From assembly GCA_951406725.2 (NCBI GenBank), contig OX597829.1, positions 39,060,001 through 39,124,000 of the forward strand: a stretch of DNA of 64,000 nt. The letters are read 5' to 3'. Below, in pieces: positions 60,901 to 62,730 of this stretch. This stretch comes from Octopus vulgaris. Its lineage: Eukaryota. The first letter of the stretch is position 1. Every line of letters starts with the position of its first letter. The notes beneath the pieces are model-generated. The model was not told where the DNA came from. It saw only the letters and a program-made list of their open reading frames with translations, and made no database searches. The position numbers and the translations under genes were made by a program.

Positions 60901-62730
60901 TTATTTTGTAGCTGATCCACTATTAGGCTCCTGTGCTGACCCTTTTTAATTCACTGCTTGTAACGGTACTTCTACTTCTACACCTTACAAACATCATTGA
61001 CTACATCTGAAATGAAGACATCTGAAACACCTCTATCTGACTACTGGACCTGGTGGAAATAGTCAACTCTCCTTCATTTCAGATACCTACTGTATTAAGG
61101 TTATACGCATGTATTTGTTGCATCTAGGGAGAGTCATTATGCCAATATAATTAACACACACAGCTTCAATTCCACCCATTAAATATCAGATTTTTATTTA
61201 ACATTCAACAGATATTTGTCCTCATCATGCCCATAGGCATATGGTGTAGTGGTTAAGAGTGCGGGCTACTAACTCCAAGATTCCAAGTACGATTCCAAGC
61301 AGTCGTCGTCATCATCGTTTAACGTCCGCTTTCCATGCTAGCATGGGTTGGATGATTTTGACTGAGGGCTGGCGAACCAGATGGCTGCACCAGGCTCCAA
61401 TCTTGATCTGGCAGAGTTTCTACAGCTGGATGCCCTTCCTAACGCCAACCACTCCGAGAGTGTAGTGGGTTCTTTTTACGTGCTACCAGCATGGGGGCCA
61501 GTCAGGTGGTACTGGCAATGACCTCACTTGAATCTTTACACATGCCACCGGCACAGGTGCCAGTAAGGCAACGTTGGTAACAATCACGCTCGAATGGTGC
61601 CCTTTTACATGCCACGGCATGGGGCCAGTCAGGCGGTACTGGCAATGACCTCGCTCAAATCTTTTTACACATGCCACCGGCACAAGTGCCAGTAAGGAGA
61701 CGTTGGTAACGATCACACTCAAATGGTACCCGTGACCTGAATAATAATAATAATAATAATAACATCGAAAAATACCTTAGGAATGAGAACCCAGGTTCGA
61801 AATTTCCCCAAGACACCTGATGAAGGCTGGAAGGTATATCAGCCGAAACGTTGGGTTAACAACAAACAAGATGAGAACAAATATCCGTCAAATGTAAGGT
61901 AGGTTGCTTATGGTTGGAACACATAATTGTGTGTATGTGCTTGCATGCATATTTTATGTAATATCTTACATGAAACGAACATTAGCTGAAAGTATACTCA
62001 ACAGAGTTAAGTAGTGTAGCATGGAAAATAGAAGTTAAATAATGACGATGATGAAAAGTGATTGTAACTTTGAAGTTCCACTGGAGACTAGTAGTTTGAT
62101 GAAGCCAACTATGGCAACACTTCAAAATCACCATCAATCCTTTACGTCTAAGTAAAATTGGGGGGGGGGGCTGTTGTGTGTGTGTGGGGGGGTGGTTGTG
62201 TGTGTGTGGGTGGGTGGTTGTGTGTGGGTGGGTGGATGGGTGTTGTGTGGGTGGATGGGTGTTGTGTGGGTGGATGGGTGTTGTGTATGGGTGGGTGGGT
62301 GTTGTGTGTATGGGTGGGTGGGTGTTGTGTGTATGGGTGGGTGTTGTGTGTATGGTGGGTGTTGTGTGTATGGGTGGGTGTTGGGTGTATGGGTGGGTGT
62401 TGGGTGTATGGGTGGGTGTTGGGTGTATGGGTGGGTGTTGGGTGTATGGGTGGGTGTTGGGTGTTGTGTGTATGGGTGGGTGGGTGTTGTGTGTATGGGT
62501 GGGTGTTGTGTGAGTGGGTGGGTGCTATGTATGTGTGTGGACTAATAGTTTACAAAAAATAAGAATTCTTTTTCTTTCCTTACCTCTGGACACTGAAATT
62601 TCCCAAATTGTGGTTTCTTTGGAATTGGTTCTTCTGGCAGACTGGAAAACCATCTTCGAATCCATATGTATTGTATAATGAGAGTTAGTATCATACCAGC
62701 TAAGGTGGATACTAAAATGGTGACAATCAT
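842..62730 (-). CDS. PDZD8: PDZ domain-containing protein 8 orthologue (TM-SMP-C2-PDZ ER contact-site lipid-transfer protein); 10 coding exons, 3' part outside window
   Basis: Spliced translation MIVTILVSTLAGMILTLIIQYIW...ESCRFLNLIFQFLFKELRDT..RRWVAKRMSMEFEDMLQTTSGK...IEYSGGFQMAVDVDLMFGKSAYLSITVTKLVGKARLLFTRDPYTHWNFAFYE...QITSFIINQIKRVVKKKHTLPNYKIRFRPFF...VEITKGHNQPVGLLF...IDSIQPDSPAE matches the recalled PDZD8 order of motifs. All 9 introns are GT-AG with consistent phases (0,2,0,0,0,0,1,0,0). Confidence 0.96.
2322..2544 (+). mobile_element. SINE family S1 (tRNA-like head, Deu/Nin-like core). Other copies about 14880(+), 18463(+), 27923(+), 28170(+), 30299(+), 35825(-), 36780(-), 48920(-), 54430(+), 56134(+), 58465(-)
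   Basis: aggcggcgagctggcagaatcgttagc..gagttcaaattcc..gcctttcatcctttcggggtcgataaattaagtaccag; this copy has an 18-bp TSD aggtaatgattttatatt. Confidence 0.85.
2634..2720 (-). CDS. PDZD8: PDZD8 coding exon 9 (87 nt; PDZ)
   Basis: tgtag|GLLTEHEEEVVMIDSIQPDSPAEKVDIRK|GTAAAT. Confidence 0.92.
2842..2948 (-). CDS. PDZD8: PDZD8 coding exon 8 (107 nt; PDZ start)
   Basis: ttacag|GT completes Ser, then FAEMKGINIKRKTWINVDVEITKGHNQPVGLLFKE|GTAATT. Confidence 0.92.
3300..3494 (-). mobile_element. PLE terminal repeat with hammerhead-like motif (family H1), fused directly to the RT fragment
   Basis: ccagataa-CTGAAGA-stem-GAAAC; same sequence at 6333-6620 and 44361-44464. The cleavage triplet here reads GAT (mutated). 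Confidence 0.75.
3495..4140 (-). mobile_element. Degraded Penelope-like element reverse transcriptase fragment
   Basis: With frameshifts and stops it reads QWSNSIEVIDWFKAIENKNKARFTQFDFVDF...LLDKALTFASEF...FHARKTLHF...MGTYDGTGICNLIRLFLL...IYKDDAL...NFLDVSLDL...YKP*RKPND...YPPRVFKNL, typical PLE RT and thumb motifs. Confidence 0.9.
6333..6620. mobile_element. Head-to-head pair of family H1 PLE termini
   Basis: About 100-bp arms 6333-6434 and 6447-6550 are reverse complements around a 12-nt loop; the right copy extends to about 6620. Confidence 0.85.
8098..8311 (-). CDS. PDZD8: PDZD8 coding exon 7 (214 nt; SMP end and first C2 half)
   Basis: ttcag|IKRVVKKKHTLPNYKIRFRPFFFKPETLHPQADFYIHGIPLGVGGLEVNVIGCSRLAKIPSNVALFCTVSL + A|GTAAGT. 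Confidence 0.95.
8442..8746 (+). mobile_element. SINE family S3 (tRNA-Arg-like head, (AAC)n tail). Other copies about 36239(-), 39915(-), 43413(-)
   Basis: A box tggcctagtggttag, B box ggttcgaatc; 15-bp TSD aatactaaaattagt (8427-8441 and 8747-8761). Confidence 0.85.
10985..11460 (-). mobile_element. RTE-type LINE 3' end with C-terminal Zn finger and (CAA)n tail
   Basis: GYMCVTCQRECLSRIGLHNHSGRC*, then ccattgtctcccgagacaaaaggatgccaacaacaac. Confidence 0.8.
11540..11620 (-). CDS. PDZD8: PDZD8 coding exon 6 (81 nt)
   Basis: ccag|EPHMEFEVEPRIEGKSFPQITSFIINQ|GTAAGT. Confidence 0.94.
12740..13445. repeat. About 700-bp (TG)n microsatellite punctuated by tttgcg/tttgca
   Basis: Read directly. Confidence 0.97.
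14407..14583 (-). CDS. PDZD8: PDZD8 coding exon 5 (177 nt; SMP core)
   Basis: aag|VLEIALDIEYSGGFQMAVDVDLMFGKSAYLSITVTKLVGKARLLFTRDPYTHWNFAFYE|GTCAGT. Confidence 0.96.
16437..16520 (-). CDS. PDZD8: PDZD8 coding exon 4 (84 nt)
   Basis: cag|VRDFNLGTRFPTFHSVIVKNEVKDSALE|GTGAGT. Confidence 0.92.
17276..18292. mobile_element. piggyBac-like non-autonomous element (TTAA-flanked, about 1.0 kb)
   Basis: TTAA|ccctttcgttac ... gtaacgaaaggg|TTAA; internal about 140-bp-period direct repeat and gggcggtttgg subterminal repeats. Confidence 0.75.
19417..19635. mobile_element. TTAA-flanked MITE (related copies about 9108-9320, 35018-35225, 49290-49535)
   Basis: ttaa|acctttagcgtt ... aacactaaaggg|ttaa. Confidence 0.65.
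20030..20273 (-). mobile_element. Second family H2 copy, inverted and abutting the first; hammerhead core partly deleted
   Basis: Reverse complement of the same head, (TAA)n and tail; core reads gacacatgatatcagctgaaac. Confidence 0.75.
20277..20456 (+). mobile_element. tRNA-headed element with (TAA)n linker and hammerhead-like tail (family H2)
   Basis: A box (tagcatagtggttaag), B-box-like gagtttgattcc, (aat)n, then gacac-CTGATGA-a-ggctg..cagcc-aAAAC; truncated close to a Helitron insertion. Confidence 0.75.
20466..20833 (+). mobile_element. Non-autonomous Helitron (368 bp)
   Basis: A|TCtctctatatatataaa 5' end; 3' hairpin ctagcactatgacc-tggcgatgccg-ggtcatagtgCTAG|T; no TSD. Confidence 0.85.
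21146..21613. mobile_element. hAT-like MITE containing a 17-bp purine satellite
   Basis: 14-bp TIR cagtggttcccgaa/ttcgggaaccactg; 8-bp TSD ctctatag/ttctatag. Confidence 0.85.
22090..23530. repeat. About 1.4-kb polypurine satellite: gaatggaa(ga)n units, then 17-bp gaaggggagaagagaga units
   Basis: Read directly; almost no pyrimidines on the plus strand. Confidence 0.97.
23679..23757 (-). CDS. PDZD8: PDZD8 coding exon 3 (79 nt)
   Basis: tttacag|A completes Arg, then WVAKRMSMEFEDMLQTTSGKFLDQIV|GTAAGA. Confidence 0.93.
24316..25100. repeat. GC-rich minisatellite: about 16-17 units of 33 bp, then about 7 units of 31 bp
   Basis: Units gccgcacgagacgaggctcgtcaccccgggcag, then gccacatgagacgaggcacgtcaccaaccag. 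Confidence 0.95.
25254..26258. repeat. Inverted 83-bp repeat plus tandem about 491-bp duplication
   Basis: 25254-25336 is the reverse complement of 25426-25508; 25332-25766 is repeated at 25823-26258 (identical ORFs offset by 492). Confidence 0.95.
26795..26975 (+). mobile_element. Possible Helentron/HINE-like non-autonomous fragment
   Basis: ttattacccccacc..ggtattgttttcag..tttgtttgtctgt..gatggatttggatgaaactt resembles recalled HINE-type motifs. Confidence 0.4.
30128..30720. repeat. Degenerate (GGT/GTA/GTT)n trinucleotide tract split by an S1 SINE
   Basis: ggtattgtag occurs on both sides of the SINE (TSD-like). Confidence 0.85.
31207..31730 (+). mobile_element. About 500-bp retroelement-like 3' end flanked by (AAT)n on both sides
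   Basis: Non-repetitive sequence between two (aat)n tracts, ending gcactgctctctcactc(aat)n. Confidence 0.45.
38340..39100 (+). mobile_element. Degraded PLE: RT thumb plus GIY-YIG endonuclease
   Basis: LPFLDILIKK..TDIYYKPMDSKQYLPFNSCHPRH..PYNLAKRIC; later FTCALENLIY...YIGQIKNSLHQRMMVHRSQI..LSEHIDIC. Confidence 0.85.
41660..42215 (+). mobile_element. RTE 3'-UTR-derived element with (GAT)n tail. About 20 copies, e.g. 1741, 4825, 9622, 10130, 10330, 18880, 28640, 31760, 33600, 37590, 56770, 61304
   Basis: Shared end ccaacccatgctagcatggaaagcggacgttaaacgatgatgat; contiguous with RTE ORF ends at 47775 and 59941. Confidence 0.85.
44361..44464 (-). mobile_element. Solo family H1 PLE terminus with apparently intact hammerhead core
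   Basis: Minus strand: ccagataa CTGAAGA gatggtggtgtggatttccaccttggcatcc GAAAC tca GTT ttattttgg. Confidence 0.75.
45297..46400 (-). mobile_element. Degraded L1/Tx1-clade LINE (possible endonuclease remnant, CCHC-type C-terminus, 3' UTR)
   Basis: YLRCLQSNKTILHVLVWCPCIADLWSYVKQLL resembles the L1/Tx1 C-terminal Cys/His motif; VCKTHF resembles the endonuclease QETH motif. Confidence 0.6.
47335..48035 (-). mobile_element. RTE-clade LINE 3' end with 3' UTR
   Basis: LREKLGIRGIGCCVHERRLRWFAHVMQMD...GRSRKS, then the same UTR as the abundant tail family. Confidence 0.8.
47497..47725. repeat. 25-bp tandem array (about 8-9 units) inside an RTE 3' UTR
   Basis: Unit gctttcacgtggaaccgcaacaagc. Confidence 0.92.
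50600..50760 (-). mobile_element. LINE RT C-terminal fragment
   Basis: VSDYKYLGSYISSEKDFLTRKGMAWSAW motif. Confidence 0.6.
51331..51702 (+). mobile_element. Non-autonomous Helitron, same family (372 bp)
   Basis: A|TCtctatatatataaa ... gccgggtcatagtgCTAG|T. Confidence 0.85.
53325..53969. mobile_element. Head-to-head inverted dimer of a variant of the same Helitron
   Basis: Minus copy about 53328-53636 and plus copy about 53686-53966 flank an AT tract; both share the variant end ctatcctagggccatcagctag. Confidence 0.85.
56410..57590 (-). mobile_element. Degraded PLE (thumb, Cys-linker, GIY-YIG) split by an RTE-tail insertion at about 56770-57135
   Basis: ILNNLHPTLQF..., TKCNIPHCLAKK; SKTQPKNLKQLLTKAKF..CGTCQFI; CLNCEEIYVGQIGN. 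Confidence 0.75.
58133..58341. mobile_element. TTAA-flanked MITE (related copy about 4545-4800)
   Basis: ttaa|cccttttgatac ... caatgaaaggg|ttaa. Confidence 0.6.
58900..60235 (+). mobile_element. 5'-truncated RTE-clade LINE relic (RT C-half and 3' UTR) with a nested opposite-strand tail at 59612-59740
   Basis: GLEPKGLRVNLTKTKV; RIRMGWVKFRELL..KGLSHQVKGGLYDACI; ends FAVLEKTHQAK* at 59941, followed by the modular 3' UTR. Confidence 0.85.
60589..60707 (-). CDS. PDZD8: PDZD8 coding exon 2 (119 nt)
   Basis: tttacag|GAC; DLFKLSGDANGKYEKESCRFLNLIFQFLFKELRDTREVR + AG|GTATGA. Confidence 0.93.
61228..61897 (+). mobile_element. Family H2 copy interrupted by an RTE-tail insertion (61304-61731)
   Basis: Head gcccataggcatatggtgtagtggttaag...gattccaagcagt rejoins gtgacctgaataat after the insert; hammerhead motif at 61812-61857. 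Confidence 0.8.
62158..62522. repeat. G/T-rich degenerate satellite (gggtgggtgttgtgtgtat-type)
   Basis: Read directly; begins about 60 nt into PDZD8 intron 1. Confidence 0.9.
62584..62730 (-). CDS. PDZD8: PDZD8 coding exon 1 (147 nt; N-terminal TM anchor)
   Basis: ATG at 62730, 49 codons ending CPE, donor GAG|GTAAGG; hydrophobic N-terminus. Confidence 0.92.

Follow-up and report, generated by a model that had tools for sequence, protein, structure and literature searches.

A high-copy repeat of Octopus vulgaris that joins a tRNA-type head to a minimal hammerhead motif and bears the insertion pattern of Penelope-like elements

A window of 64,000 nt from the genome of Octopus vulgaris (contig OX597829.1 of assembly GCA_951406725.2; G000:C16:39060001-39124000 in the coordinates used here) carries copies of a short repeat in which a tRNA-type head, a trinucleotide linker and a tail containing a minimal hammerhead ribozyme motif (min-HHR) follow one another. 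Here we describe this repeat from the window and from searches of the whole 2.8-Gb assembly. The family is a real composite with more than 10^4 copies, and its insertions have the DNA pattern of Penelope-like elements (PLEs), from which we infer the nature of the mobilising enzyme. The repeat is likely to be a Penelope-dependent short interspersed element (SINE), with a putative PLE as its source of enzyme. Put in full, the reading that we favour and consider probable is that of a young, high-copy, non-autonomous retroposon of ~284 nt, composed of a tRNA-derived head and a PLE-type min-HHR and mobilised by PLE machinery.

The repeat unit and its abundance

The family consensus of 284 nt, built from aligned genomic loci, opens with a head of 81 nt, runs through an (AAT)n linker into a tail of 150 nt and closes with 33 nt of 3' extension (TACATAATTCCTCATCTCTTAAATATAGAACTG) that not every copy has; across other copies the linker is (AAT)n, (AAC)n or (AAG)n. 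When the tail of the window copy was used as a 158-nt query, at least 2,790 candidates were found in the genome at first look, and at least 40 of the genomic copies match the window tail with 96–98% identity over these 158 nt, the best 40 at full length. Abundance was measured with exact words, for which reversed words served as controls: genome-wide there are 4,814 matches to a 26-mer from the hammerhead, 3,462 to a 30-mer from the extension and 3,681 to a 21-mer from the head, and no match to any of the reversed words. Because most copies found through the extension word carry a mutated hammerhead (the exact hammerhead word lies upstream of 7 of 65), the real number of arms, i.e. of single copies within the inverted pairs described below, should be several-fold above these counts; as a rough estimate it is of the order of 10^4, perhaps about 3x10^4. 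An initial annotation of the window, made from the sequence alone, had proposed a genome-wide search and a consensus as a check on the ribozyme, and the consensus does retain a complete minimal type-I hammerhead.

The proposal that head, linker and tail belong together was likewise borne out. They form one retroposed unit, in that target-site duplications (TSDs) enclose whole units and 5' truncations fall in all three parts. A head lies upstream in 25 of 30 tail loci, and ~70% of head words have a tail 100–200 nt downstream when mutated copies are counted. The tail and the extension are further connected by a perfect 9-bp hairpin, AGAUGAGGA in the tail with UCCUCAUCU in the extension (consensus ~207-275; L009:1630-1700), which encloses the (UAAAUAAUG)n stretch. 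Copies of the GAGAAC subfamily, the window copy among them, have one pair of this hairpin broken without compensation.

Insertion pattern

At 22 of 31 loci, including both loci in the window (at 20 kb and 61 kb), the repeat occurs as head-to-head inverted twins whose inner junctions vary from locus to locus. The same orientation emerges from the 100 hammerhead words on contig C1, where eight pairs within 1.5 kb are of the (-,+) type, none is (+,-) and one is tandem. The 5' truncation points are spread over tail, linker and head; within the head, twin arms are truncated at positions 7, 10, 13, 20, 37, 49 and 56, and hence the head belonged to the RNA that was copied. Of the 22 twins, 21 have the 33-nt extension on one of their two outer ends and not on the other, where the arm stops within (TAAATAATG)n.

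We tested 26 whole insertions for TSDs of at least 8 nt, with mismatched flank pairs as controls. Such duplications, 8–13 bp long, flank 10 of the 26 as compared with 0.6% of the controls, and they enclose the whole twin (e.g. GACCTCAA at L015, AGTATTTGGGGGG at L013 and AGAAATTATTT at L011). The targets are ordinary AT-rich DNA, as GACCTCAA and AGTATTTGGGGGG illustrate, with no bias towards microsatellites.

The two arms of a twin differ at subfamily-diagnostic sites in 5/14 and 5/13 twins, their content overlaps, and they are no closer to each other (identity 0.90) than are arms at different loci (0.89). Since the arms overlap and still differ in this way, two different RNA molecules must have been copied in a single event. 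Arms with different subfamily markers were seen in the twins at L006, L008, L014, L018, L019, L020, L025, L029 and L030.

Insertions of PLEs are known to comprise an inverted, 5'-truncated copy beside the unit, and a 'tail' of 30–40 bp that is often found at one end only (Craig et al., PMC8557442); the inverted-arm scheme and the one-ended extension of the octopus repeat match this published scheme. Twin priming of the L1 type differs in that it yields non-overlapping segments of a single RNA, whereas the octopus arms overlap. A fixed palindromic DNA transposon was also considered as the source of the twins and was rejected, as the junctions differ everywhere and the extension is at one end only.

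The minimal hammerhead motif

The initial annotation had read a hammerhead in the tail of the 61-kb copy at 61812-61857, and the string GACAC-CUGAUGA-A-GGCUG-N10-CAGCC-GAAAC-GUU-GGGUU is found there letter for letter. Its parts, all on the + strand, are as follows.

61812-61816, +: GACAC, helix I 5' strand
61817-61823, +: CTGATGA box of the hammerhead core
61824, +: extra unpaired A (sequence reading)
61825-61829, +: GGCTG, helix II 5' strand
61830-61839, +: 10-nt loop of helix II
61840-61844, +: CAGCC, helix II 3' strand
61845-61849, +: GAAAC, i.e. core GAAA (61845-61848) plus C
61850-61852, +: GTT triplet, with cleavage predicted between 61852 and 61853
61853-61857, +: GGGTT, helix I 3' strand, 4/5 paired with GACAC

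A relaxed min-HHR descriptor was run on the window and on 300 Markov-shuffled 64-kb sequences. It gave a single match in the window, at 61817-61852, and three matches in the 300 shuffles, or ~0.01 per window; the sequence observation is far beyond chance. In the consensus, helix I is GACAC/GUGUU with all five pairs formed, beside the GUU triplet (U16.1-U17), and the window copy departs from this by a G.A mismatch (U1.2 to G) that leaves 4/5 pairs. The consensus core consists of CUGAUGA, an unpaired A, a 5-bp helix II closed by G10.1-C11.1, and GAAA. There is no helix III loop: GAAA-C-G-UU contains an ACGU palindrome with a C15.2-G16.2 pair and a zero loop, so that helix III can form only between two RNAs.

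In window and consensus alike, the predicted type-I layout holds and matches the min-HHRs of PLEs feature for feature. For these ribozymes, Cervera & de la Peña (2014, PMC4209133) name three traits that their own search had not imposed: a base separating position 9 from 10.1, closure by G10.1-C11.1, and a palindrome at 15.2/16.2. The extra A, set down in the annotation as an oddity, is thus a hallmark of PLE min-HHRs, diagnostic rather than aberrant, since a base after A9 is listed among their traits (PMC4209133). According to the same study, min-HHRs occur as thousands of dispersed single motifs per metazoan genome, with opposite-strand pairs 100–700 bp apart, and cleave poorly, even as dimers.

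Variants of the 46-nt motif were tallied over 68 copies. Two are common, T to A at N7 (14/68) and G to A in loop 2 (23/68), the rest being background or CpG decay; N7 and loop 2 are positions that are free to vary in any hammerhead. The two CpGs of the motif decay quickly in individual copies, and every invariant core base is kept in the consensus. This pattern weakly suggests constraint on the hammerhead of the source genes (two events, about p=0.07). Under strict criteria, 20 of 43 best-match copies and 5 of 23 copies sampled by position retain an intact hammerhead. Separately, ~35 copies (e.g. G000:C16:38763622) share GAAACGTT-AAC, having lost the five nucleotides GTGTT by slippage and with them the 3' strand of helix I.

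Other min-HHR families were seen in the genome (e.g. at C2:52708738), the search giving 321 matches as compared with 63 for the reversed control. One has a 7-bp helix II and reads CUGAUGA-U-GUGGAUG-N7-CAUCCAC-GAAAC; a further one reads GCCUA-CAAAA-UAGGC. Members differ by apparently compensatory changes. The example taken up at L111 (G000:C3:58962855-58962888) turned out to be an isolated, decayed motif without an open reading frame (ORF).

The tRNA-type head

The pattern TGGCNNAGTGG-N(25-40)-GTTCGANNCC, i.e. intact A and B boxes, is present in 11 heads and always with the same 55-nt span; a weaker form of the pattern is expected by chance 0.01 times per 64 kb. The head features named in the initial annotation, an A box, an anticodon-loop-like CTACTAA and the linker, are indeed there, while the B box is not intact in any of the three window heads, the consensus being where it is found. 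The sense strand has no TTTT run, and no poly(A) tail was identified in the repeat.

Counter-evidence and alternative explanations

The results gathered in this section weigh, in one part or another, against a Pol III-transcribed (RNA polymerase III), PLE-mobilised composite that carries a hammerhead in use, and we set them out beside the explanations that they would favour.

The tRNA origin of the head was not picked up by standard models. ARAGORN called no tRNA in the window, in near-consensus copies or, at a relaxed threshold, in the family consensus, and Rfam gave none at E<=10. The missing TTTT run is not significant, 54% of shuffles being without TTTT as well. Rfam hammerhead covariance models, a check named in the initial annotation, likewise found nothing in the window or in near-consensus copies such as L015, either at the gathering threshold or at E<=10. 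The silence of the two programs says little, since their models require a cloverleaf in the case of the tRNA and helix III in that of the hammerhead.

A trinucleotide microsatellite precedes the tail start at every site that we looked at (the first 100 of 1,033 listed sites), with no tail start outside such a context, and behind ~30% of head words (AAT)n gives way to unrelated DNA, without a tail within 300 nt. Together with the preference of PLEs for microsatellites (PMC8557442), these head-only copies would suit an account in which head and tail are independent and merely co-occur, for example through a tail element that at every locus inserts anew into the (AAT)n tail of a simple SINE. Such an account may well describe a single founding event. 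As an explanation of the family it is highly improbable and already contradicted, given that TSDs flank units running from head to extension, as at L015 (GACCTCAA), that arms are truncated at many head positions, and that heads accompany tails, and tails heads, in the proportions reported above (25/30 and ~70%). The tail-less heads may represent an older, simple microsatellite-tailed SINE from which the composite arose; they fit this origin and do not prove it. Examples are L093, L096, L097, L098, L100, L103 and L106, L097 and L098 being a local duplication.

The search for a PLE partner started from the GIY-YIG domain (PF01541), which yielded 5,955 candidates, and six sequence groups were sampled in 30 loci. 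The genome holds active PLEs with reverse transcriptase (RT) and GIY-YIG domains, hammerheads of their own and inverted upstream fragments. The sampled groups are dominated by a young PLE with 781-aa open frames (RVT_1 plus GIY-YIG) in many copies, a 456-bp terminal repeat and an inverted upstream fragment (L037, L061:1930-7172 and L062-L066). Its hammerhead, ~70 nt from the 3' end, reads UUGAUAA-GGUUC-N10-GAACC-GAAAC-AU-GUU; such a U3-A8 core covariant has already been reported for PLEs (PMC4209133). The five other groups have no hammerhead within 1.5 kb of the endonuclease (EN) domain.

The initial annotation had suggested looking for an autonomous PLE that shares the tail, and there is none among the six groups, which give no match to the tail, the extension or the hammerhead type of the repeat. 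The 781-aa PLE, moreover, abuts (TA)n, unlike the ordinary AT-rich targets of the repeat, and each of the 20 extension sites sampled proved to belong to a copy of the repeat. The octopus motif is part of a 284-nt non-coding unit, not of a terminal repeat belonging to a PLE that encodes RT and EN. The sampling of PLEs is incomplete, since about 30 active families are reported for O. vulgaris: a repeat annotation of 2026 counts 30 active Penelope families, besides 893 SINE families without classification, and leaves ribozymes unmentioned.

We also considered the extension as the 3' end of some other element and rejected this, the candidates L065 and L067 being 5'-truncated copies of the repeat. 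At L067 the 71 nt upstream are unique in the genome, and the adjoining 'family X' is an unrelated repeat without an ORF. Family X forms a ten-unit tandem array of ~3.7 kb per unit, without ORFs, at G000:C16:56503791-56537681 (L070), and occurs also as a 145-bp tandem array at G000:C28:22707176-22708919 and in inverted pairs.

With no partner found among the sampled PLE groups, an ordinary tRNA-SINE that depends on a long interspersed element (LINE) has to be weighed. Here an enzyme of the CR1, RTE or Dong/R4 type would recognize (TAAATAATG)n and the terminal 33 nt, and the hammerhead would be an inert relic or a chance resemblance. TSDs, 5' truncations and the head are what target-primed reverse transcription generically produces, and CR1/L2-type SINEs have tails similar to the short tandem motif found close to the 3' end. 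The ~30% of heads that end in (AAT)n alone look as a simple microsatellite-tailed SINE would, and recently active LINEs are abundant in O. vulgaris (2026 repeat annotation). We nevertheless regard this alternative as unlikely. The twin arms overlap and both end at or near the 3' end, unlike those of L1-type twin priming, and they come from different templates; the one-ended 33-nt extension is a published trait of PLEs (PMC8557442); and the motif has four PLE-specific features beyond the conserved boxes. No LINE-like sequence was seen beside the sampled sites (20 extension sites and 100 tail starts). At L069:2230-3672 (-) there is a LINE RT fragment with a FADDTKL motif, interrupted by a (CATA/CGTA)-type microsatellite; a 5'-truncated copy of the repeat close by is unrelated to it.

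A further alternative grants PLE mobilisation and takes the ribozyme to be dead, so that the tail would be a piece of a PLE terminal repeat, captured and kept solely for sequence or structure that the RT needs, with a hammerhead that never cleaves. Several lines of evidence agree with it. The proposed covariation test failed, the family being too uniform: there are no compensatory pairs, and of eight double mutants in helix II three can pair, about the level expected by chance.

Energy modelling does not favour a dimer with active sites. A nested antiparallel double hammerhead can be written, with helices I and III intermolecular and helix II intramolecular, at -22.7 kcal/mol; by the same nearest-neighbour energies two monomers reach -27.2 and the best dimer, an extended duplex, -31.2 kcal/mol. 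The double hammerhead was accordingly rejected as the thermodynamic optimum, monomers and extended duplex being predicted to be more stable. Nor was a genomic footprint of cleavage found. If cleaved 5' fragments were reverse-transcribed, copies ending directly after GUU would be expected; 48 copies lose homology at this point, mostly through GTGTT slippage, which is no enrichment, and inserted copies always span the predicted cleavage site. Published min-HHRs cleave poorly even as dimers (PMC4209133), and some PLE clades thrive without hammerheads (PMC8557442). What speaks for a hammerhead under selection is that the consensus keeps all invariant core bases despite the quick CpG decay in copies, and that subfamily changes are confined to N7 and loop 2, a weak argument with its two events. 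We see a dead ribozyme as a possible explanation, though less likely than not.

Copies in the window

The remaining features of the 61-kb locus and those of the 20-kb locus are listed here.

20024-20281, -: inverted arm, nearly complete (consensus 6-284); its outer end, 20024-20056, is the 33-nt extension
20279-20458, +: forward arm of the 20-kb twin, consensus 3-190 (self-BLAST and consensus alignment)
61175-61228, -: short inverted, 5'-truncated arm of the same repeat, consensus ~206-259 (reverse-complement local alignment)
61229-61303, +: first 75 nt of the tRNA-type head, with A box, anticodon-loop-like CTACTAA and degenerate B box
61242-61252, +: perfect A box TGGTGTAGTGG (sequence reading)
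61266-61272, +: anticodon-loop-like CTACTAA (sequence reading)
61285-61296, +: degenerate B box aagtacgattcc (sequence reading)
61304-61733, strand not assigned: nested, unrelated and very abundant repeat of 430 bp, not part of the element (self-BLAST)
61734-61762, +: GACCTG, the 6 nt that complete the head, then the (AAT)n linker at 61740-61762
61763-61897, +: tail module, ending within (TAAATAATG)n and without the 33-nt 3' extension

The span 61228-61897 had been taken as one element. Head, linker and tail do make up one copy, from which 61304-61733 has to be removed: this segment recurs in part at 25 or more other sites in the window, never joined to a head or a tail (self-BLAST), and splits the head consensus at CAGT/GACCTG, with a duplicated GT on its flanks. 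It holds an internal duplication of 129 bp (61474-61602 and 61603-61731, 86% identical). Because the inverted arm at 61175-61228 abuts it, the copy that starts at 61229 is one side of a head-to-head twin; in the window self-BLAST, 61201-61229 matches 20065-20093.

That three copies share the head and tail modules was confirmed by self-BLAST, yet neither of the two at 20 kb has an intact ribozyme. In the (-) copy a 16-nt deletion takes out the CUGAUGA box and destroys the hammerhead, and in the (+) copy G12 is changed to A and the copy stops just after GAAAC. Its end at 20458 is no evidence of cleavage, since copies that end after GUU are not enriched genome-wide.

Proposed mechanism and its significance

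Under the reading that we favour, the degenerate tRNA-derived 5' module with its A and B boxes would most likely drive Pol III transcription of the whole unit. The 3' module would offer a type-I hammerhead without helix III, the (TAAATAATG)n stretch and a 33-nt extension that could pair with the tail in the hairpin. A putative PLE-type RT/GIY-YIG machinery would reverse-transcribe and integrate the RNA, each event usually copying two different RNAs, one per side of the target; the outcome would be head-to-head twins with variable 5' truncation junctions, one TSD and the extension at one end. An active site would form only when two RNAs pair via the ACGU palindrome and swap their helix I strands. 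The hammerhead probably cleaves weakly at best, and its role may be in processing or in the pairing or recognition of templates.

The last of these possibilities can be taken further. The repeat might be the first clear class of tRNA-promoter SINEs to use PLEs and not LINEs, with two template RNAs joined through the palindromic helix-III/helix-I swap of the min-HHR, and priming at the two sides of the staggered break taking place on separate RNAs. We offer this stronger version as a speculation with little probability of being right in full; if it were true, inverted twins from different source genes would be explained, and the role of the min-HHR, long a puzzle in PLEs, would be structural (template dimerisation) and not purely catalytic.

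SINEs are defined by their dependence on LINEs, and a dependence on PLEs would extend the concept to a third class of retroelements. In that case many 'orphan' min-HHRs of invertebrates could be the cargo of Pol III-driven parasites and not truncated PLEs. Twin arms that derive from different RNAs would provide a mechanistic clue to PLE integration in general. As a uniform, young family, the repeat is a tractable system for the cleavage of min-HHRs in vivo, for dimers in trans, and for the origin of twins and of the one-ended extension.

Comparison with known systems

We found no description in the literature of a hammerhead-bearing or PLE-dependent SINE in cephalopods, which agrees with the novelty presumed in the initial annotation; an entry in Repbase or Dfam is possible. 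The novelty is smaller than was assumed there, since min-HHRs have been published by the thousands from dispersed sites in metazoans, and Pol III repeats with a hammerhead, SINE-like in character, from Schistosoma.

The closest relatives of the motif are the min-HHRs of PLEs, which are also treated by Lünse, Weinberg & Breaker 2017, as cited in PMC6765202. The octopus motif shares with them the type-I layout, CUGANGA and GAAA boxes, an unpaired base between A9 and G10.1, the G10.1-C11.1 pair, palindromic 15.2/16.2 and a short helix I, as well as the occurrence as thousands of dispersed single motifs and opposite-strand pairs 100–700 bp apart. It differs in its location, which is outside the terminal repeat of an RT-encoding element and downstream of both a microsatellite linker and a promoter of tRNA type. 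Its helix II has 5 bp (6 with a G-C wobble extension), whereas the Schistosoma families have 7–8 bp, and the octopus family is highly uniform in sequence.

Classical tRNA-SINEs are similar in having A and B boxes at tRNA spacing, a length of ~300 nt, no ORF, 5' truncation, TSDs and more than 10^4 copies. In contrast to them, the octopus repeat has an internal microsatellite, occurs mostly as inverted twins and is extended at one end, and no LINE-derived or poly(A) tail has been identified in it.

The non-LTR (long terminal repeat) retrozymes (Cervera & de la Peña 2020, PMC7229834; bioRxiv 10.64898/2026.07.22.740005) are, like the octopus repeat, small non-coding hammerhead retroelements, with low GC content and TSDs longer than 4 bp. 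In animals they are thought to borrow the enzymes of PLEs (PMC7229834; bioRxiv 10.64898/2026.07.22.740005). Retrozymes are organized head to tail in tandems of 150–450 bp, with canonical type-I hammerheads and circular RNAs, while the octopus repeat forms no tandem arrays, its units are not permuted around the cleavage site, and it has a tRNA-type head.

A parallel to the composite as a whole is that of SMalpha and Sjalpha of Schistosoma (Ferbeyre et al. 1998; Laha et al. 2000). As far as the summaries in PMC6765202 and PMC8490949 describe them, these too are short, non-autonomous, high-copy repeats in which a Pol III-type promoter is followed by a type-I hammerhead. In the same summaries, SMalpha has a hammerhead of the canonical, fast-cleaving kind, equipped with helix III and loop-loop contacts, and is largely tandem, so that cleavage splits the promoter from the unit. 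The octopus repeat, in contrast, combines its promoter-like head with a min-HHR and is dispersed through the genome as PLE-type twins.

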